This document shows positions 243 through 10,037 of a stretch of 64,000 nucleotides of DNA, piece by piece. A model generated the notes under the pieces. The model saw nothing but the letters and a program-made list of their open reading frames with translations, was not told the origin of the DNA and searched no databases. The stretch is from the NCBI GenBank assembly GCA_965644295.1, contig CBFFRP010000377.1, positions 1-64,000 of the forward strand. The letters are read 5' to 3'. Within the stretch, counting starts at the first letter, position 1; every line of letters begins with the position of its first letter. This DNA comes from Paraphysomonas bandaiensis. Lineage: Eukaryota > Protista > Chrysophyceae. Both the position numbers and the translations under genes were made by a program.

Positions 243-3200
243 TCGGGTTCTACTTATCATGCTGCCCAGTTGTATAAGATGTCTACCAGCAAATACTGGA
301 GAGCAGCACACAGAGAAGGGATTATAATAAATAATGATAATGATGAAATTGTAGTGGATGTAGCTTTATTTGACTCGGGATCGAGCAATGATAATTTTAT
401 TTCTAAGGAGTATTTGGATGAAGTTGGAGAAAAGTTAAAAAAGCATTTAGTGGAAAGGCCAATTCGAGTGAGAGTAGCCAATGGTAAAGAAGTTCAGATA
501 AAGGGATATGTTCCTGTTACAATGCAGTTTAAGGATTGCGAAAAGATCTACAGTGCTGAGCTAAAGCTGTATGTGTTGGATGGATTGACTAAAGAAGTTA
601 TAATCGGTTTGCCAGCTATATGCGAGCACTTCGCAGAATTGTTTTGTAAAATGGTTCAGTCTACAAGTGATGCGAATTCGGGTGATACTATAATGCATCT
701 AAACTTGCTTGCTGGCGTGGAGTGTCAAATTAACTATTCGATAGATGATTTCGAAACTGACTATAACAAAATTACTAAAGTTCCTACACGAGTGCCATGG
801 GGGAAGCCTAATGCAGGGGTTGCTCCGGAAGATGAGTTGATGCCAGAACCTTGTTCATTTGGTGGACTTATAAATTTTATGGAGATGTCAGTGGAAGAGG
901 CTGAGCAAGAGTACTTGAGCAAGTTGGAGGAGCGAATTCATCCTGAATTTGCGAAGCAGACAAAAGTTTTAGAGCTGTTGAGGACACTTGGAATGGAAGT
1001 ATTTGTACCTAAAAAGTGGACTGGAATCAAGATGACGCCACTTAAACTCAAATGCAAGTCTACAATTCCAGATCGGATTAAACCGAAAAATATGCGAAGG
1101 GTTCCTCCGAAATTGTACGATCGGACCAAGCAGGAGTTTGAAAGAATGTTAAAGTATTTCTACAAAAAGAGTATGAGTCCATACGCTTCGCCTATTGTAG
1201 TTGCACCAAAGGCAACGAAACCTTTCATTAGGATATGTGGAGACTATCGCGTTGTCAATCTTGAGATGGAGAGTCCACACTTCCCGATTCCTGATGTAAT
1301 CAAAGAGTTGCACAAGGCTGCAGGATATAAGGTTTTTGTTGACTTAGACATATGCAATGCATTTCATGGCATACCTCTGGATGAAAATACGTCAGCATTG
1401 TTGTCTGTACAAACACCGTGGGGCCAATTTGAGCCGAAGTTCTTGCCAGAAGGAGTGTCTCCGGCTAGTGGGGTGTTGATGATGGTAATGTCAGAGATAT
1501 TCAGTGATTATACCGAATGGATGATTGTCATATTTGATAATATGCTGATATTAGCGAACGATTATAATGATGCGTACACCAAATTGGAATTGGTTCTAAT
1601 ACGTTGCAAAGAATACAATGTGGTGTTGAAGTTATCTAAGAGTAAGTTCGGATATTCTTCGGTGGAGTTCTTTGGATATTTGTGTCAGGATAATACCTAT
1701 GCGCTGACGCAGGAACGAAAAGAATCTGTAAATTCAATTATATTTCCAGAAGGTGCAAATAAAACTAAACAAATGCAACGGTTTTTGGGAGCTGCAGTGT
1801 ATTTCAAACCATTTATAGTGGACTACAGTCAGTTAACGCATCGGCTCAATGATATGACTAAAAAGGATTTTGATTGGACAGAAGCAAATTGGAAAGTAGA
1901 CTATAGGAATGAGTTTGAAACGTTCAAAAAGGCCATACTAAAGTCTCTTACCTTGTATCACCCAGATTACAATTTGCGATGGTTGTTAATGACTGATGCT
2001 TCAGACTATGCCTGTGGTGGAGTGTTAATTCAGATTGCAATTTCAGATGAGGGTGTAGAATTGTTTCAAGTCATTGCATTGATATCGAAGAAGTTTACCG
2101 CCAATGCAATGAAATGGTCTATCATTGATAAGGAGTGTTTCGGAGCGTTTTACAGCATCTATAAACTGTCGTATTACGTGCGGGGCAAACACTTTACACT
2201 TCTTACTGATCATGCTAATCTGAAGTGGATGGAGCAATCAGAGGTGGATCGTATTGTACGTATGCGTGTGTATATGCAGAATTTTCAGTTTGACTTATTA
2301 CACTTCAAAGGCAAACTGAATAAATTTGCAGATTGGTTGTCTCGCCAAGGTGCTGCTGATGATGCAGTCGCTCTGGTTTCAGTTTTGGATTCATGTATAA
2401 ACTGTGCAGAGGAGAGTGAAATGCCTGAACTGAACTGTATATATGAGAACGGGTGTTTATTGTCAGATGATGAAATATTTAACATAGAGAGCACAACAGA
2501 GCCAGATGTCATAGATATGTTGTGTATGTCTGTATTTCCGGAATCAGTGTTGCTGGATTTAGAGGAGCTGATTCAGGAGAGCCCAAAGCCTCGTTCAGCA
2601 AAGGAAGCCTTCGACATGGTACACAATGGTCGAATGGGACACCATGGATTGCGTAGAACATGGTTAAAATTATGCAAAGTCTTTCCTGGACATGGTATCT
2701 CTATAGAGACTGTACGTAACTTTATTGATGAGTGCGCTTTATGTCAGAAGTTGAACAGTGGTATGTCCGATTCGTTACAAGCGCCTGTCAGAGCTTTGGA
2801 TGCAGAACATTGCAGACATTTTGTGGGTTTCGACACACTTACAGTCAGTCCTCCTGATGCTCAGGGACACTGTTGCATACATGTTGTGAAGCAAATGCCA
2901 GCCCGATTGATAGGACTCTACCCAGCTAAGGACTATAGAGCGGAAGGAGTTGCTAGAGCGTTGTTTCATTACTTTGTTACTTATGGAATTTCAGAAGTAC
3001 TGATTTCAGACCCTGGGTCAAACATTACTGCTGAAGTGGTACAGTTATTGTTGAAGTGGTTTGGAGTTCGATTTCGAGTGTCATTAACTAATCGTCATGA
3101 GTCCAACATGGTCGAGCGATCTCATCGAGAGCTGTTGCGATTTCTACAGGGTTTAGTCCACGATGAGAGGTTGCAAGATTCATGGGGGGACATTGAGTGT

Positions 3201-4217
3201 TACATGTTGATTCAGTTCATTTTGAATGATGAAGTCAGTAGTGAGACTGGACTCTCTCCTTTTCAATATGTGTTTGGTACCGTTGATATTCCATATTTTC
3301 GGTTGGGTGAACTGACTATGGATGAGTCTTCTGCTGCGGGTTACGTGTCTATTTTGAATGAGAACTTACAGAAGATTCGAGCGGTTGCCATGGATGTTCA
3401 GCGCAAGATCCAAGACAAGCGCAAGTCTGCCACGCCTGCACATACTTTGAACGAATATCAGCCTGGTGATTTAGTTTTGTTGCGGCTGGATCCAACTCAA
3501 CATAAGCCCAGCAAATTGTACCCTCGTTTCAAAGGTCCTTACGAAGTGGTATCCACGTATAAGGCTGATGTCACATGCATGCATGTTGTGATGCGTTTTG
3601 AAGTTGTGTTGCACATGTCATGGCTCAAACCGTTCTTTGGTACGCCTGAGCAGGCATATCGTGTTGCGCAAATTGATTTTAACCAGTATACTGTGGTTGC
3701 TGTGATTGCATACCGAGGAGATCCGGAGGTTCGTTCTCGAATGGAATTCCAAGTTCAGTTTGAGGATGGTTCGTTATTATGGCTTCCATGGTCACAGGAT
3801 ATCGCTTCCACCTCGCAATTTCAGTCGTTCTGTGAGCAGAAACCTCAATTGTTCCCTCTGTTGTTTTCTGCTGCTATGGCAAAATCTGAACGTGCACGTT
3901 TGAAACGTATTCCTATTGAAGGGGTGTCACCTGGTCAAACAATTTATGTAGATTTGCGTGCATGGGGTTCAGATTTCTATGATGAACTTAATCTGCCGAA
4001 TTGTTATACAACGATGTATGTTGTCGAATGTTCTTATGTGCGGTGGGCTGGCCGTCGCCAGTTACGTATAGACCTCTATTGCCCTTTGTTTCAATCTACA
4101 TATGAATGGAGTGCCTATGACGTTCACTGCTATGGTCGAGTCACGGAATTTGATCCTTCTACTATGGTATTGGTGGATGCTGCATTCTGCCAACAATATC
4201 CTAATATTCTCCTCTAA
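243..4217 (+). CDS. Gypsy pol polyprotein: aspartic protease, RT, RNase H, integrase, chromodomain, extra C-terminal domain
   Basis: ALFDSGS protease; RICGDYR / DLDICNAF / IFDN RT; TDASD..DKE..TDH..ADWLSR RNase H; HHCC, D-D-E and GPY integrase; chromo-like YTVVAVIAYRG..EFQVQF..WLPW; no stop from 243 to 4214. Confidence 0.95.
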   Translation, partial: SGSTYHAAQLYKMSTSKYWRAAHREGIIINNDNDEIVVDVALFDSGSSNDNFISKEYLDEVGEKLKKHLVERPIRVRVANGKEVQIKGYVPVTMQFKDCEKIYSAELKLYVLDGLTKEVIIGLPAICEHFAELFCKMVQSTSDANSGDTIMHLNLLAGVECQINYSIDDFETDYNKITKVPTRVPWGKPNAGVAPEDELMPEPCSFGGLINFMEMSVEEAEQEYLSKLEERIHPEFAKQTKVLELLRTLGMEVFVPKKWTGIKMTPLKLKCKSTIPDRIKPKNMRRVPPKLYDRTKQEFERMLKYFYKKSMSPYASPIVVAPKATKPFIRICGDYRVVNLEMESPHFPIPDVIKELHKAAGYKVFVDLDICNAFHGIPLDENTSALLSVQTPWGQFEPKFLPEGVSPASGVLMMVMSEIFSDYTEWMIVIFDNMLILANDYNDAYTKLELVLIRCKEYNVVLKLSKSKFGYSSVEFFGYLCQDNTYALTQERKESVNSIIFPEGANKTKQMQRFLGAAVYFKPFIVDYSQLTHRLNDMTKKDFDWTEANWKVDYRNEFETFKKAILKSLTLYHPDYNLRWLLMTDASDYACGGVLIQIAISDEGVELFQVIALISKKFTANAMKWSIIDKECFGAFYSIYKLSYYVRGKHFTLLTDHANLKWMEQSEVDRIVRMRVYMQNFQFDLLHFKGKLNKFADWLSRQGAADDAVALVSVLDSCINCAEESEMPELNCIYENGCLLSDDEIFNIESTTEPDVIDMLCMSVFPESVLLDLEELIQESPKPRSAKEAFDMVHNGRMGHHGLRRTWLKLCKVFPGHGISIETVRNFIDECALCQKLNSGMSDSLQAPVRALDAEHCRHFVGFDTLTVSPPDAQGHCCIHVVKQMPARLIGLYPAKDYRAEGVARALFHYFVTYGISEVLISDPGSNITAEVVQLLLKWFGVRFRVSLTNRHESNMVERSHRELLRFLQGLVHDERLQDSWGDIECYMLIQFILNDEVSSETGLSPFQYVFGTVDIPYFRLGELTMDESSAAGYVSILNENLQKIRAVAMDVQRKIQDKRKSATPAHTLNEYQPGDLVLLRLDPTQHKPSKLYPRFKGPYEVVSTYKADVTCMHVVMRFEVVLHMSWLKPFFGTPEQAYRVAQIDFNQYTVVAVIAYRGDPEVRSRMEFQVQFEDGSLLWLPWSQDIASTSQFQSFCEQKPQLFPLLFSAAMAKSERARLKRIPIEGVSPGQTIYVDLRAWGSDFYDELNLPNCYTTMYVVECSYVRWAGRRQLRIDLYCPLFQSTYEWSAYDVHCYGRVTEFDPSTMVLVDAAFCQQYPNILL

Positions 4218-4447
4218 TTGTTGATTACTTTTATTTATTTAATATTTCATGATTATATCATATATATATTATAACATTCATACTATTATTCATACTTATT
4301 ATCATAATATTGCTCTACGTATGTTTATTACTTTTATTTCATGAATTGGATTTTTATTTGCTAATGCTTGGAATGACGCTTTATTGGCTGATACAAGTAT
4401 TACTTCTATCTATCCCAGATATGTATTCTTATTTCTTTTCTCTAGCT

Positions 4448-4461
4448 GGAGGGAGAAGGGG
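4448..4461 (+). other. Polypurine tract of Gypsy element
   Basis: GGAGGGAGAAGGGG ending 3 nt before the LTR TG. Confidence 0.85.
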
Positions 4462-4464
4462 TAG

Positions 4465-4851
4465 TGTCACGCATACCTGTAGTTACTGTTATACGTGGAG
4501 TTATACTGTGTTATACTGCGGTACTCTAGGTAGCATGCTGTTGTACTTTCATTTTCAGTTTATTTAGTATACATTGCGGTTACTGTATTCTTGAAGGGAT
4601 ATAAGTCCCGTATAACTACAAGTATGATACTGTAAACTGTAGATGATTCACAGCAAGATAGAGTGTTGTATGTTTTCACTTCTTTCTTTACACGTTTTAA
4701 CGTAATTTAATTCATTCTATACTCGCGGTTTGCTTGTGTTAGGAGGCAGTTTCACCGGTTTGGTGTTCTGGACAGTGTATTCTCGGTTTGGGAAGCACTT
4801 TAAATTAATAAAAACGTTGTAAACACGGTCTTTCTCATCAGAAAGATTACA
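4465..4851 (+). repeat. Gypsy 3' LTR (387 bp)
   Basis: Starts TGTCAC after the PPT and ends GATTACA; TATA-like ~4600 and AATAAA ~4807; abrupt AT-to-GC switch at 4852 where the endonuclease coding is cut. Confidence 0.8.
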
Positions 4852-6033
4852 TGTGCAGTCGGTGCTCGTGCGGCGAATGCTTCCCTTCCATGCCTCGCTG
4901 ACCACTGCGATAGTTCCTCCCATATGCGGGTCATGGGGGCCGAGTTTCTTCGTTGTGTTGAGGAAGTTGCATACAAGTACCCCTGGTAGTTGGTCCTGGA
5001 TGTATTCAGCGAGATATGCTGCCTGATGTTGTGACAGACGGACATCAAGCAGGTACAGGCAATCGATGTGCTGCGTGCGAATGTAGTGAAGGATGGCCTC
5101 TATTTTTCCCGGATTGCTGGAGGGGTTACCATTAACATTCCATGTGGAGAAAGTGAAAGTCGTGGTAGGTGTAAGGGGGTTGCAATCCGACGCCGAGGAT
5201 GCGGTTGTGGTGTGTGCGTGTGGGAGCTTGCTGTCGAGGAGGTCTTGCCATTCCTGCGCGCTGAGTTCAACATCTTCGGCGTAGGCCTCTCGCGCTTGAT
5301 GGAGGATCTCGAGCGGCCACTTAGGGTCTTGCCAGTATCGGTACCCGTAGTTTACGAGTAGTTCTTCGTGTGTGGTGATGTTTCTCGTGGCTCTAATGTA
5401 GATTCGACCGTTCGTCGTGTGGAATTCTACGTTAGCAGCCCTGAACTGCAATGGGTCGTTGATGTATCCTGCTGCGCAGAGTATTGTTTTGCTTCGTTTG
5501 TCCCTTGCGTCTATTGCAAATGTGCCCTGCGCATCTTGGACAAGATAGTCCGAGACGTACTCGGTGGACCGTGCTGTTTTGATGGGCATGCGATAGCCGG
5601 TGTACTCCGAGATGATGGCCTGGGCAGGGATTGGCTCTCCGGCGTACAGAGCAGTACCTTTAAGAGGGGTGTCAGCGGGACCCACGAGAACTTTGTGGTT
5701 GAGCGTTGGGTCCCACGTGAGCGGTCTTGGGGGGTGAGCCGAGTTTAGTAGGGTGTTGAAGTGGGCTTTTGGACGGTAGACGGCATGTGTCTGAACTTCG
5801 TCCAGGACTTCGGCGTAGGAGCGTGTATAGTTTGCTTTCCGGGCAGGCTGCTTCCTCGTGGGGGCTGGTGTTAGGGTGCGTGTTTTCCTGGTGGTGGTTC
5901 TCCGTTCTCCAGAGGTGGGTCTGGGGTGGGGGAGATGGGGTGATTCAGGGGATATGGCGGGTTCTGCTGTTGTGTATGGGTTGCGTTGGGAGTAGGTGTC
6001 ACAGGGCTCTGTGGGCGTGGGTTGCCTCACCAT
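4852..6033 (-). pseudogene. SET-domain methyltransferase (~5330-5680) followed by N-terminal part of an AP-endonuclease (EEP) domain (~4852-5156)
   Basis: KGTALYAGEPIP..SEYTG..AIDA..GYINDP..NVEF..IRATRNI..EELLVNYGYRYW; TFSTWNVNG..IDCLYLLDVR; the ORF tail 4717-4851 is read-through into the LTR. Confidence 0.8.
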
Positions 6034-6260
6034 CCCTTCTGACCGTCCAGGGGTCCGGACCTGGCGACATAGCGCTTTTATTTGCCAGAGGTGGGTCTGG
6101 GGTGGGGGAGATGGGGTGATTCAGGGGATGTGGCGGGTTCTGCTGTTGTGTATGGGTTGCGTTGGGAGTAGGTGTCACAGGGCTCTGTGGGCGTGGGTTG
6201 CCTCACCATCCCTTCTGACCGTCCAGGGGTCCGGACCTGGCGACATAGCGCTTTTATTTG
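5909..6260. repeat. 176-bp tandem duplication (5909-6084, 6085-6260)
   Basis: Two adjacent copies, one substitution seen (gatatggcgg vs gatgtggcgg); length is not a multiple of 3. Confidence 0.95.
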
Positions 6261-6741
6261 GTGCTCCATGTGAATGAGTGCATTATCGAGATTGGCTGCG
6301 AGGCCTGCTGGGTTGAGGAGGGAGTAGTGTGCATCGTGTAGGACAATGTGAGGGTGGTCTGTTAGGATGGCTTCCCTGAGCTCCTGCGACGCCCATGCGG
6401 GGCGATGTGCGGTAGCGTCGGTCGGGATGCCGACGATCCGTATGGTCTCGCCGTCTGTTGCCCAGGTGGTTACAGGGGTGAGGAGCATGGCTATGGAGTG
6501 TATCTCACTAACTGATAACCAATGGCGGACGTCTTCAGCGCTGGTGTAGGTGTGTTGATGCTTGTGGATGAGGGCTGTGTGGGCGTGGTGTAGCTTGGCT
6601 ATGGTGGGACCTGTGCAATTGCCCTGGATGTTTTGCAAGAGGTTCTGGATCCACTGGCCAGCGTGGGTCCTGTGGTCATGGCTTCGGAAGTCGAGCTCCC
6701 AGTACGTGGCTGAGGGTTTTGTTTGTTTGTAGCATGTGGAG

Positions 6742-9543
6742 TCAATGTAAGGTACCGTACGCACAGTAGCCATCAGTGGGTATAGGGTGGGCAGTTTGTA
6801 TGTCGGTGATCGGTATGTGGAGTCGGAAAATGCGGCCTGCATTCTGCATTGCGGTGCGCGTGGATATGGGGCACTCAGCGTTCCGATGTTGGACTGTGAT
6901 CTCTCTGATGCCGCGCTGTGAGGTTGCTATTGTTACCGCCCCATCAGTGTGCGTGACAAAGGTGGGGGCGGCATGGGTAGTGTCTGCATGTGTGGTAGTG
7001 TCGTCGGGAAGATTGTGCGTGTGTTGCTTAGGCCGGACTTCAGGTGCCGGCGTGTGCTCGTCGTGAATGGGTGTGTTGCTTAGCCGATGTGGTCGGTGGT
7101 CTGGGTGACTGGGGCGTGCCGTGACTGCGCATGTTGTGAGGTCCGTAGCGTGTGGCTGTGTAGTCCTCTGTGCTTGATGGAGGAATCGGGAGAGTGCCAA
7201 CTGGGCACGTCGGTGCGCGTCTTCAAGTTTGGATTCGATGTCGGGTGTTCGTAGGAGGAAGTAATGTGTGTTAGTGGTAGCAACGTTGTGTGTGGGCTCG
7301 GTCATGGGGGTGTGGCTGTGGTGATTGAGTAGCATGACCCAGCCACTACAGAGGGAGCCTGAATTTCCGTCCCAGAGTCGAATGTTGATACGAAGAAGGT
7401 GGAGCAGTGTTTTGAAATCAGTGATCTTCATGTGATGGTCTGCAGAAAGTACACATCGTTGAGGGGGCATGGTGGTTAGGGCCTTGTGCGCGGATTTAAG
7501 GATGCTGAGTAGGCGGTGCGTGTGTGCCTGTCCGGATGCAAGGCAGAGTCGTTGGAGATATGTGATGAACTTATGCAGTTCTTTTGCATCATCAGCAGTT
7601 TGGAGGGGGGCTTTGGGGTAGTCTCCTGGCGAGGGGGAGTTGTGAAGTTGGTACGCGGTTGCGAGGGGGCCTAGGCCGCGCTCTATCGTGGCTCTGTAGT
7701 CAGCCTCCCAGTCGAAGTTGGCGACTCGAATGTAGTTTGCATCGTCGTGTATGATGTGGAATAGTCGAGTCCAGTCAGTCGTGCCTGCCATGACGGTGTT
7801 GTGTACGTGGCAGAGCAGGTCTTCGCGTAGGGAGACTGCGACTCGGTTTGTGTTGTCGTATGATGCCCAGGCGTTTGCAAGTGAACTGGTGAACGGGGAC
7901 GCTCCTCGTCGGGCAGGCTGGGGTTGCGGTGTCAAGGGGGGTGTTGTCGCGCGTGGGGTTGCCCTGTCTTGCGTAAGAGGTGTTAGTTCCGGGGTGTTTT
8001 CTTGTGGGTTTTGATCTGTGGGCGGGAGTGTACGTGAATCGTTGGGGGTGAACCGGGCGGAGGGCTTGGACTGCGGGATGGGTGGAAAGTAGTCAGCTAG
8101 CGTCAAGCCGCGATTGCATCGCCTGGGGGGGTGTACCGCAGTTTCTGGAGCTGTCAAGGTGGTGGTATCATCGGCTTGGTGGGTTTTTCCTGGGGATGTG
8201 GGTTGTCGGGTCACATTCGGGGGTTTGCGTGGTCGTCGCTTGGGCGGACCATCGCTGCTGTCGTCGCTGCTGTAACCAGGCCCAAATTGTCGTGGTCTGG
8301 GTCCATCTGCTGTCTTACAGGTGAAGAATTGGTCTAGCTCGCCTACATTCGGTAGTTCCAGTGCGTGTCCCGATAATCCCGCCACGGTGCATCCTTTGGA
8401 CGCCGGTCTTACATTGTTCAGTAGTCTTGGGTGTACTACCGAGACATCCGCCTGGTTGTCGAGTAATACCTCGTACCATTGGAATGGCTCGCTTCCTGAC
8501 GTGAAGGCGTTCAACATTGTTGTCGTGCAGTGCTTGTTTTCTGATTCTTGGCTACTGTCTGGGCATTCGTTCATTCTGTGGCCTGGCTCACCGCAGCCCC
8601 AACATATGAGCTGCCTTTTTTTCTGACCACGTTTGCTGTTGTGCGACTTCGTGTCGTTCCCTTGTTGCTGCTCTGGTGTATCATCGCTATCTGCTGATTT
8701 CTTGCCTTTGTCAGACTTCGATTTGCTCACGAATGCGGATCCGCCGCCTGCTCTCGTTGCTCTCTTCGGCGTTAGATATTTTGATGCTTTAGTATATATT
8801 TCATTCACATGCGTAGGTGCTGTTTGCGTTCCCATTGTTAGATCGTTGAGATAGCTAGTTTTGAACTCGCCATATCTCGTGTCGTCCAGCCCTTCGAAGA
8901 AATCCATCGCGATGTCCTCTTCATTCATTTCCGCGTTGTTCATGTCTTTGTAGGCTTCTAATAGATGATCAAACCTCTCCTTATAAGTAACTATACTCTC
9001 ATATGCTCCCTGTTTAGCGTCTTTGTACCTTTTCCTCGCTTCTGCTCGTACCACTGTACTTACGCTGGAGTTAGTGGATACTTTGTGGGTTTGTTTGATA
9101 GCCAGCCATAGTAGTAGAGGATCCTTAGTCCTGTTCATGAGCTCGTATTCATCTAATAGCTTGACTGCATCCATTGATTCGTGGCTCAGATGGTCTACCA
9201 TGAATGAGTAGAATGCCGATCTATCGTTCCGCATCTTGTCTATTAATCTCCCTCTGGTCTTGGTCTTGTCCTTCATCAGGTCGAGGTTAACTCCATAGGG
9301 GTCGTCTTCCAAATCAAAATCCTCTGGGTTTATCGCATCGGGCTCATAATATTTGTCCAGCTCTACTAGGCGTGCAAGATCACCGTACTTTTGCATGCCC
9401 ACCACTACAAGCCTCTGTTTGAATGTGGCGAAGTTCGAGTTGGCACCGTATCTTAAAGTCGGTACATGTTCTGGTCTATCGGTGCTCGGTTTCTTGCCGA
9501 ATCTTGCAAATCTTGTTGGCTTGTCGTTCGTTGTCTTCTTCAT
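6742..9543 (-). CDS. Chimeric ORF: Copia gag-protease fused in frame to Pro-rich linker and OTU-like domains
   Basis: 933-aa ORF; composition and codon usage switch near 8300 (FFTCKTAD|GPRPRQF). Confidence 0.7.
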   Translation of the reverse strand: MKKTTNDKPTRFARFGKKPSTDRPEHVPTLRYGANSNFATFKQRLVVVGMQKYGDLARLVELDKYYEPDAINPEDFDLEDDPYGVNLDLMKDKTKTRGRLIDKMRNDRSAFYSFMVDHLSHESMDAVKLLDEYELMNRTKDPLLLWLAIKQTHKVSTNSSVSTVVRAEARKRYKDAKQGAYESIVTYKERFDHLLEAYKDMNNAEMNEEDIAMDFFEGLDDTRYGEFKTSYLNDLTMGTQTAPTHVNEIYTKASKYLTPKRATRAGGGSAFVSKSKSDKGKKSADSDDTPEQQQGNDTKSHNSKRGQKKRQLICWGCGEPGHRMNECPDSSQESENKHCTTTMLNAFTSGSEPFQWYEVLLDNQADVSVVHPRLLNNVRPASKGCTVAGLSGHALELPNVGELDQFFTCKTADGPRPRQFGPGYSSDDSSDGPPKRRPRKPPNVTRQPTSPGKTHQADDTTTLTAPETAVHPPRRCNRGLTLADYFPPIPQSKPSARFTPNDSRTLPPTDQNPQENTPELTPLTQDRATPRATTPPLTPQPQPARRGASPFTSSLANAWASYDNTNRVAVSLREDLLCHVHNTVMAGTTDWTRLFHIIHDDANYIRVANFDWEADYRATIERGLGPLATAYQLHNSPSPGDYPKAPLQTADDAKELHKFITYLQRLCLASGQAHTHRLLSILKSAHKALTTMPPQRCVLSADHHMKITDFKTLLHLLRINIRLWDGNSGSLCSGWVMLLNHHSHTPMTEPTHNVATTNTHYFLLRTPDIESKLEDAHRRAQLALSRFLHQAQRTTQPHATDLTTCAVTARPSHPDHRPHRLSNTPIHDEHTPAPEVRPKQHTHNLPDDTTTHADTTHAAPTFVTHTDGAVTIATSQRGIREITVQHRNAECPISTRTAMQNAGRIFRLHIPITDIQTAHPIPTDGYCAYGTLH

Positions 9544-9824
9544 AATTTCCTCTTACGCAGAGAAAAATACGGTACTCGGTCGAATGTTACGGATGTTACA
9601 AATCAATAAACGGACGGAATACCCCCGTTGCTTTCACACAGTCTACACTACAGGTAGTCAAAGCAAGGTTCTCTTTATAGTTACTACAGAACTTCTCAGT
9701 AAGAGGAAATTATGCCTCTATTCTACAGCCGTACACTACACACTGCATAATATAACACCATACACCTTTATGTGCCCTATGCATATCTTATACAGTCACT
9801 TCAAGTACTAAACTGAAAAGAACA
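8300..9824 (-). mobile_element. Ty1/Copia retrotransposon 5' portion (LTR, gag, truncated protease)
   Basis: NSNFATFKQRL gag start, CWGCGEPGHRMNEC CCHC knuckle, VLLDNQADVSVV protease; upstream LTR candidate. Confidence 0.8.
9585..9824 (-). repeat. Putative Copia 5' LTR (~240 bp)
   Basis: TGTT...AACA termini just upstream of gag ATG; the second LTR is not in the window, so boundaries are unconfirmed. Confidence 0.55.
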
Positions 9825-10037
9825 TCCTCTCATTCCTCTACGTTCTATATCACCTGGACTACTGGAACTACAGTGCAGTATTAATAGTATACAGCGCAGT
9901 GCAGTGTACAGTGAGAGTTCTTATATCAGCACAGCCCTCTCAGCCCTTCTCTCCATACAAACACTGCATTGGAGGGAATATCTAGGCAAGTGAAATAACG
10001 ACACGGTGTGCAGTTCGAAGATTAACGATCAGCAGTA

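Follow-up and report, generated by a model that had tools for sequence, protein, structure and literature searches.

What kind of element lies behind three minus-strand open reading frames (ORFs) near the start of a contig of the chrysophyte Paraphysomonas bandaiensis? The window analysed here is a stretch of 64,000 nucleotides (nt) at the beginning of contig C377 (CBFFRP010000377.1, assembly GCA_965644295.1). The ORFs, at 6742-9543 (933 amino acids, aa), 6078-6842 (254 aa) and 4717-6033 (438 aa), lie in a region of 0.55-0.59 GC with a strong strand skew, whereas the flanking DNA is at ~0.40 GC. A preliminary description, made from the letters of the window, read them as the remains of a retroelement in which two OTU-like modules and a SET methyltransferase precede the beginning of an AP endonuclease (APE). 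We find, with high confidence, that minus-strand positions 4853-8303 are a dead copy of a giant APE-type retrotransposon lacking long terminal repeats (non-LTR retrotransposon, or long interspersed nuclear element, LINE), from a family with many and diverse members in this genome. What is of interest is the family so revealed, the window copy being no more than a dead fragment.

The family is best seen in relatives with long open frames, which share 76-80% nucleotide identity with the window. The relative in C661 carries a 2001-aa ORF with SET (119-223), Exo_endo_phos (290-532) and RVT_1 (978-1255), while C644 carries an uninterrupted 3731-aa frame with, in order, SET1, OTU1, pseudo-OTU, OTU2, SET2, APE, reverse transcriptase (RT), an RNase H-like domain and CCHC (Table 1). 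The window fragment is colinear with aa 1027-2117 of the C644 protein. Subfamilies C426, C143 and C440, at 39-58% aa identity to C644, hold SET, APE and RT in a single frame of 2479-2913 aa; our subfamily comparison is based on five subfamily representatives. In C661, C644, C440, C143 and C426 alike, RVT_1 follows 400-500 aa past Exo_endo_phos in the same frame. The endonuclease is a full domain in these relatives (E down to ~9e-13), with STWN.NG, GGDFN and SRIDHI conserved, and the best solved-structure matches of the RT are R2 and human L1 ORF2p. Relatives of this RT are very few among 5.8 billion proteins, and nearly all of them are unnamed metagenome ORFs. The preliminary description had supposed that its severed APE would lead into an RT, and in intact relatives from the same genome it does, with a same-frame non-LTR RT after the APE. 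Nor does a Rep/helicase take the place of the RT: when the full ORFs of five subfamilies were scanned with Pfam, neither a Helitron Rep nor a PIF1 helicase turned up. The 3' end, ...GATCTATTTATAT, is common to C644 and C661 and is without poly(A). The core architecture extends beyond this genome, since a metagenomic ORF of 2005 aa at 30% identity (P0006) reads SET-APE-RT-RNase H-like-CCHC, without OTU modules; the metagenome scan yielded no further SET-APE element besides it.

How the window copy came to be broken becomes apparent from the other copies. A DNA search of the organism's own genome (62.6 Mb, 669 contigs) divides the region into two parts, 8304-9842 and 4853-8303, that match two separate families. 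The C574 copy, 98% identical to that of the window, has LINE sequence (...FCCNQHFFLDL...) and not gag upstream of the junction at 8303/8304 and runs on upstream into OTU1, so that the window copy is a 5'-truncated insertion into a gag element. Given that 8304-9543 belongs to this gag element, the 933-aa ORF is a chance gag-LINE chimera; the LINE start at 8303 agrees with the limit near 8300 proposed earlier, the first 414 aa of this ORF being gag. At the other side, LINE homology ends at 4853, adjoining the LTR end of a Gypsy element at 4852, and the FSTWNVNG start of the APE is thus severed by a Gypsy LTR as had been described. The poor Exo_endo_phos match of the window (E = 0.023) is due to this cut. 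The order of the layers is therefore that the LINE was 5'-truncated on insertion into a gag retroelement and that the Gypsy element inserted later, inside the APE domain.

Between these boundaries, the three ORFs are one broken frame. Protein alignment to the intact C644 element continues to 6745, ends at the stop at 6742-6744 and restarts in another frame at 6713. In contigs from related strains, two more bases follow 6716, the base at 6744 differs, and a 176-nt unit that is duplicated in the window occurs once; the unit is also single in contig C593 of the same genome. Because other copies are free of these lesions, the stop, the frameshift and the 176-nt duplication are private to the window copy. 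Since 176 mod 3 = 2, a single unit explains the change of frame between ORF 6078-6842 and ORF 4717-6033. All three lesions by which the preliminary description had joined the ORFs (the stop at 6742-6744, the gap near 6716 and the duplication) are hence confirmed by the C644 alignment and by the related-strain contigs.

The family is a multi-copy element and not a single-copy host gene. Genome-wide, no fewer than 76 places match the OTU2 module and no fewer than 83 match SET2; the two lie ~0.9 kb from each other on shared contigs, and many of these places sit in stop-free frames of 1000-3700 aa. Computing dN/dS on the SET and OTU domains had been suggested as a check of the original reading; we did so pairwise by the Nei-Gojobori method, for C644 against C505 and for C644 against the window. 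Purifying selection acts on every module measured, with values of 0.10-0.30 across OTU1, pseudo-OTU, OTU2 and SET2, the pseudo-OTU that lacks the cysteine included, while linker 2 is neutral (Table 1). Divergence is uneven along the element: the window copy shares just 44-45% identity with C566 and C644 in OTU2 but 79% with C644 in SET2, and dS varies several-fold between adjacent modules of the same copy pair (OTU2 0.12 versus OTU1 0.91). This unevenness of dS and of identity indicates that the subfamilies are mosaic, by recombination or by module swapping. With its near-identical copies and long open frames, the family looks recently active. At one locus (G000:C505:57816-63169, L024) an internal LINE segment, reaching from the end of OTU2 to where APE begins, is present as three tandem copies with a period of 2178 bp.

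The SET domain is the most readily recognised of the accessory modules. The earlier call of a SET methyltransferase stands in the window copy itself, where SET2 exceeds the Pfam cut-off (38.7 versus 22.4 bits), and the domain is above this cut-off in every copy tested (34-56 bits in the relatives). It is minimal and PR/SET-like, with PRDM2_PR co-matching in Pfam, and it weakly matches solved structures of Set1 and S. pombe Set7. The motifs G.ALYAG, EYTG, C.A.Y.ND.L and EELL..YG..YW are conserved out to P0006, and EELLVNYGYRYW with its Tyr, as well as the Asn of YINDP, is conserved in every aligned SET2 copy. The INDP-type variant of the canonical NH.C motif is also found in small standalone SET proteins, which are a possible source lineage of the transposon-borne domain. 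About 20 or more such standalone proteins in the metagenome scan, most of them 135-250 aa long, share both LINE SET motifs. Small SET proteins with C.A.Y.ND and EELL..YG, at 27-39% identity, lie on metagenome contigs L052-L080, some of which are 40-190 kb long.

Within the genome, 98 Pfam SET matches are found at E <= 1e-5, the SET2 of the window (C377:5344-5658) among them, and about 60 or more of them are in LINE copies; most SET domains in this genome are transposon-borne. Outside the LINEs, the SET domain of this genome that is most closely related to that of the LINE (29-33% identity) is itself inside a retrotransposon: two Gypsy elements, L049 (C476:1500-9500, at 1718-7558 on the minus strand) and L050 (C654), read RT-RNase H-SET-integrase, with a Pfam SET match of E = 1.7e-13. 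They resemble the LINE in carrying a minimal PR/SET-like domain inside a retrotransposon polyprotein and differ from it in being LTR elements with an integrase, with SET between RNase H and integrase and without OTU modules. Several further SET matches fall in other repeated long ORFs, one multi-copy group having a 1526-aa open frame.

Are the modules ahead of SET2 OTU proteases? The DGYC and AHY motifs noticed in the window are present (in 6745-6840 and within 6183-6713, respectively) and align with conserved columns of the family. The OTU2 motifs IP.[ND]GYCAY, HWLS, TTW and H.[IV]L[HQ][DN]AH[YF] are kept in every aligned copy, so that catalytic-type Cys and His motifs are found in OTU2 of all subfamilies, both window halves included; the corresponding motifs of OTU1 are GNGFC and QHFF. 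In the predicted structure of OTU2 the Cys lies at the beginning of a helix and the His comes after a late strand. When this model is compared with 48,161 PDB chains, OTU domains occupy 16 of the 19 top rows over residues 2-176, including a Wolbachia OTU (6w9r, Z 5.4), the Crimean-Congo haemorrhagic fever virus (CCHFV) vOTU (Z 5.1), OTUD1/2/3, OTUB1 and yeast Otu2; in Foldseek, nairovirus OTUs rank first at a non-significant E >= 0.4. For OTU1, language-model features match ESM-Atlas clusters of PF02338 at 0.94 (193 of 256 features shared), 78 of 100 matches being in that set, and the clusters are mostly from haptophytes and giant viruses. As judged by profile comparison, OTU1, pseudo-OTU and OTU2 are paralogues. 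In hhalign, OTU1 matches pseudo-OTU with a probability of 87% (E = 4e-6), and pseudo-OTU matches OTU2 with a score of 32.3 versus 13.6 +/- 2.4 (maximum 19.1) in 150 column shuffles. OTU1 against OTU2 directly gives no hhalign signal; the link passes via pseudo-OTU.

A number of results weigh against this reading of the modules and of the element. Pfam finds no match in any of the three OTU-like modules at E <= 10, and the genome-wide PF02338 scan recovers 10 host OTU loci, none of them in a LINE. Searching the PDB by sequence and by profile with OTU2 and OTU1 returns no OTU, and hhalign of the modules against an alignment of the canonical OTUs of this genome is not significant. Both AlphaFold models are of low confidence (pLDDT 48, for OTU2, and 52), the Z-scores of the OTU2 fold search, at most 5.4, are under the level deemed safe, and the fold search with the pseudo-OTU model gives helical hairpins only and no OTU. 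In the SET domain, the NH(S)C motif reads INDP with its His and Cys replaced, which makes catalytic competence uncertain. Target site duplications were not found, and the one further copy that reaches the 5' end of the family (C408) is broken at that point by the Gypsy LTR also seen in the window. Three candidate RNA runs gave contigs of 30-50 kb that are DNA-like, and no expression evidence. Other searches gave the OTU reading no support: phmmer with OTU1, pseudo-OTU and OTU2 together (1071 aa) against 1.84 billion representatives returned only 3 short unnamed metagenome fragments, the Atlas feature search with pseudo-OTU gave no usable match, and for OTU2 both that search and a shape search with the model were uninformative. 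Pseudo-OTU has a Leu at the Cys position in the window lineage, while subfamily C426 retains GRGFC; with the Cys lost and no OTU match from model or features, its name is a fair one. We consider an OTU fold of the modules probable. The OTU identity put forward in the preliminary description is thus supported by the fold of OTU2, the features of OTU1 and the paralogy of the modules, and finds no backing in any sequence profile or in the model of pseudo-OTU.

What could such modules do for a LINE? The element would yield one very long polyprotein. During target-primed reverse transcription, lysine methylation close to the nick would fall to its SET domain, with a histone of the nucleosome at the target as the most plausible substrate and the ribonucleoprotein (RNP) or a host factor as others. 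For the OTU modules, isopeptidase or protease activity would mean stripping ubiquitin-like marks and/or cutting the polyprotein at QG..[FY]SSD.SGDGP. A chromatin function of SET and OTU at the nick site is something that we only infer. The putative cutting site belongs to a motif, QG..[FY][SAT]SD.S[GS]DGP followed by a basic run (PRKRRPRKPP), that occurs 1-3 times per element in the fast-evolving linkers, at aa 373, 1011 and 1045 of the C644 protein, and also near the N-terminus of a distant relative, P0007. It is a candidate site for cleavage or processing, for nuclear or other localisation, or for phospho-regulation.

This motif lends itself to a different account, in which SET and OTU are real enzymes that serve polyprotein maturation and self-regulation: the OTU would cut the linker motif, and the substrates of SET would be proteins of the element itself or a host restriction factor. 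The OTU-like proteases of tymoviruses and arteriviruses cleave polyproteins, viral OTU proteases are the top structural matches here, and a single ORF of 3731 aa laid out as module-linker-module, with the motif and its basic run conserved in fast-evolving linkers across all subfamilies, would suit such a role. The SET domain, too, is minimal and most like the standalone proteins of 135-250 aa. The motif, however, is unlike known OTU and ubiquitin-like sites, which end in Gly-Gly. Moreover, SET adjoins APE in all members, the OTU-less P0006 included, which fits action at the target site. We regard maturation and self-regulation as possible, if somewhat improbable.

One may also doubt that the modules are proteases at all. 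They could be lineage-specific domains other than OTU, such as a nucleic-acid chaperone or an ORF1-like RNP component, leaving SET, APE and RT as the only enzymes. Since these LINEs lack a separate ORF1, RNA must be bound by some part of the N-terminal region, and the absence of any Pfam or profile match to OTU, the mere three fragments retrieved by phmmer with the 1071-aa N-terminal region, the low pLDDT and a pseudo-OTU with neither the Cys nor an OTU fold match would all be expected. Against this, two independent structure aligners put OTU domains first for OTU2, the features of OTU1 fall at 0.94 among PF02338 clusters, and Cys and His stand at the positions expected of an OTU and are kept in every aligned OTU2 copy; we therefore hold a non-OTU nature to be unlikely. 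Far less probable still is that nesting or assembly has joined the domains by accident, or that the locus is a Helentron or a host gene instead of a LINE. The window is indeed a three-layer nest with a chimeric 933-aa ORF, and stramenopile Helentrons do carry SET, OTU and APE (PMC4067079). Against these stand one and the same colinear order in the unbroken frames of five subfamilies (39-58% aa identity) and in the metagenomic element at 30%, an RT in place of Rep/helicase after APE, at least 76 genome places, and purifying selection across module junctions. On the strength of the colinear frames, the RT after APE, the copy number and the selection, host gene, Helentron and artefact were rejected, and the LINE reading is retained.

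Other APE-type LINEs are known to carry accessory domains: NeSL and Hero have a Ulp1 protease, Dualen a cysteine protease, and CR1 and L2 an esterase or PHD. The family described here shares with them the backbone of APE, RT, RNase H-like domain and CCHC, as well as 5'-truncated copies and a single long ORF with extra domains. Unlike them, it has SET directly before APE, up to three OTU-like modules and a second SET, an ORF of up to 3731 aa, no 3' poly(A) and an RT with very few relatives. The author of the preliminary description did not recognise this architecture, and our literature searches aimed at it likewise found no LINE with SET or OTU; in the literature searched, we found no description of a SET-APE-RT LINE clade or of the combination of SET and OTU. 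Compared by domain types, the closest set is that of Helentrons and of a Phytophthora proto-Helentron, which carry an OTU-like cysteine protease, SET and APE (PMC4067079). In Helentrons, OTU and SET are separate ORFs around Rep/helicase and the APE is fused behind the helicase (PMC4067079), whereas in the LINE the domains are fused in one frame ahead of APE-RT, without Rep/helicase. Epigenetic "writer" domains encoded by transposable elements (TEs) are also found in DNMT-carrying retrotransposons (de Mendoza 2018, as cited in PMC6338049) and in a survey of chromatin-TE fusions, where SET methyltransferases are among 823 fusion gene models (bioRxiv 10.1101/2021.11.30.470311). The LINE fusion differs from both in being family-wide, under selection and dominant in the SET repertoire of its genome. 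As for OTU proteases, those that are the top whole-domain structural matches of OTU2 (Wolbachia OTU 6w9r, nairovirus vOTU 3phu and OTUD1/2/3) share with the modules [ND]-G-x-C ahead of a helix and a late strand that bears H-[YF]; the modules depart from them in having no detectable sequence-profile similarity, a larger helical insert and one paralogue without the Cys.

LINEs are usually thought to deliver only nucleic-acid enzymes to their target. The present family is a concrete case of a retrotransposon with enzymes of the histone-code type, in parallel to the DNMT-carrying retrotransposons, and it opens two questions to testing: do mobile elements alter chromatin or ubiquitin signalling where they themselves insert, and what is the origin of the SET, OTU and APE genes found in Helentrons? 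For annotation, it means that most "SET-domain proteins" in this genome are transposon ORFs and not host chromatin regulators. A far-reaching version, which would draw on the related SET of Gypsy elements, on the mostly TE-borne SET domains of the genome and on the insertion of one Gypsy family into two LINE copies, is a chromatin system run by retrotransposons, in which the LINE SET writes a lysine-methyl mark and the OTU modules erase ubiquitin-type marks at integration sites, TE-encoded writers shape heterochromatin and guide other TEs, and the OTU, SET and APE of stramenopile Helentrons share ancestry with those of the LINE; this is speculative, and we doubt that it holds.

Table 1. Features of the window and of the intact C644 protein, with pairwise dN/dS of modules and linkers
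Feature	Sequence	Position	Strand	Basis or remark	dN/dS, C644 vs C505	dN/dS, C644 vs window
Gypsy pol ORF	window	270-4217	+	Pfam RVT_1, RT_RNaseH, Integrase_H2C2; 5' part and 5' LTR off contig		
Gypsy 3' region and 3' LTR	window	4218-4852	+	terminus ...AGAAAGATTACA (GATTACA) at 4852		
LINE fragment	window	4853-8303	-	5'-truncated at 8303, 3'-cut at 4853; DNA matches of other copies span exactly this		
APE N-terminal ~98 aa (FSTWNVNG...)	window	4853 to ~5145	-	Pfam Exo_endo_phos E = 0.023; Gypsy-cut		
SET (SET2)	window	5344-5658	-	Pfam E = 1.4e-9, 38.7 bits vs cut-off 22.4		
Tandem 176-nt unit x2	window	5909-6084, 6085-6260		99% identity; in OTU2-SET2 linker		
OTU2-like, C-terminal part	window	6183-6713	-	...HIVLHDAHY... 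His motif; 44% identity to C566 OTU2		
Frameshift and stop	window	6714-6744	-	2-nt gap vs other copies near 6716; in-frame stop 6742-6744		
OTU2-like, N-terminal part	window	6745-6840	-	IPTDGYCAYGTL Cys motif (DGYC)		
Pseudo-OTU	window	7150-7914	-	paralogue of OTU1/OTU2; Leu at Cys position; NTHYFLL where OTU2 has DAHY		
Linker motif QFGPGYSSDDSSDGP, then basic run PKRRPRKPP	window	8224-8283	-	just inside 5' truncation; found in all subfamilies		
gag/zinc-knuckle retroelement, 5' 1.54 kb	window	8304-9842	-	zf-CCHC match; contributes first 414 aa of 933-aa ORF		
SET1	C644	aa ~518-641		mapped from C566		
OTU1	C644	aa ~790-975		motifs and alignment	0.10	
Pseudo-OTU	C644	aa ~1160-1420		motifs and alignment	0.24	0.30
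OTU2	C644	aa ~1470-1685		motifs and alignment	0.22	
SET2	C644	aa 1849-1953		Pfam	0.13	0.10
APE	C644	aa 2020-2262		Pfam		
RT	C644	aa 2708-2985		Pfam		
RNase H-like (DGS...E...D...H...D) and CCHC tail	C644	after RT		motifs		
Linker 1					0.38	
Linker 2					1.06	

The two elements that enclose the LINE fragment belong to repeated families of their own. The Gypsy LTR end (...CATCAGAAAGATTACA) adjoins two different LINE copies, one in the window, at its APE, and one on C408, in the 5' region (L027 ~543-660), which could be chance between abundant families or could reflect a preference of this Gypsy for LINE loci. On the other side, window 8304-9842 has at least 17 copies at 97-100% identity in the own-genome DNA search. 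The polyprotein of this gag/zinc-knuckle element is open over at least 916 aa, with no Pfam match besides the zinc knuckle, and only ~300 nt precede gag at the common 5' end.

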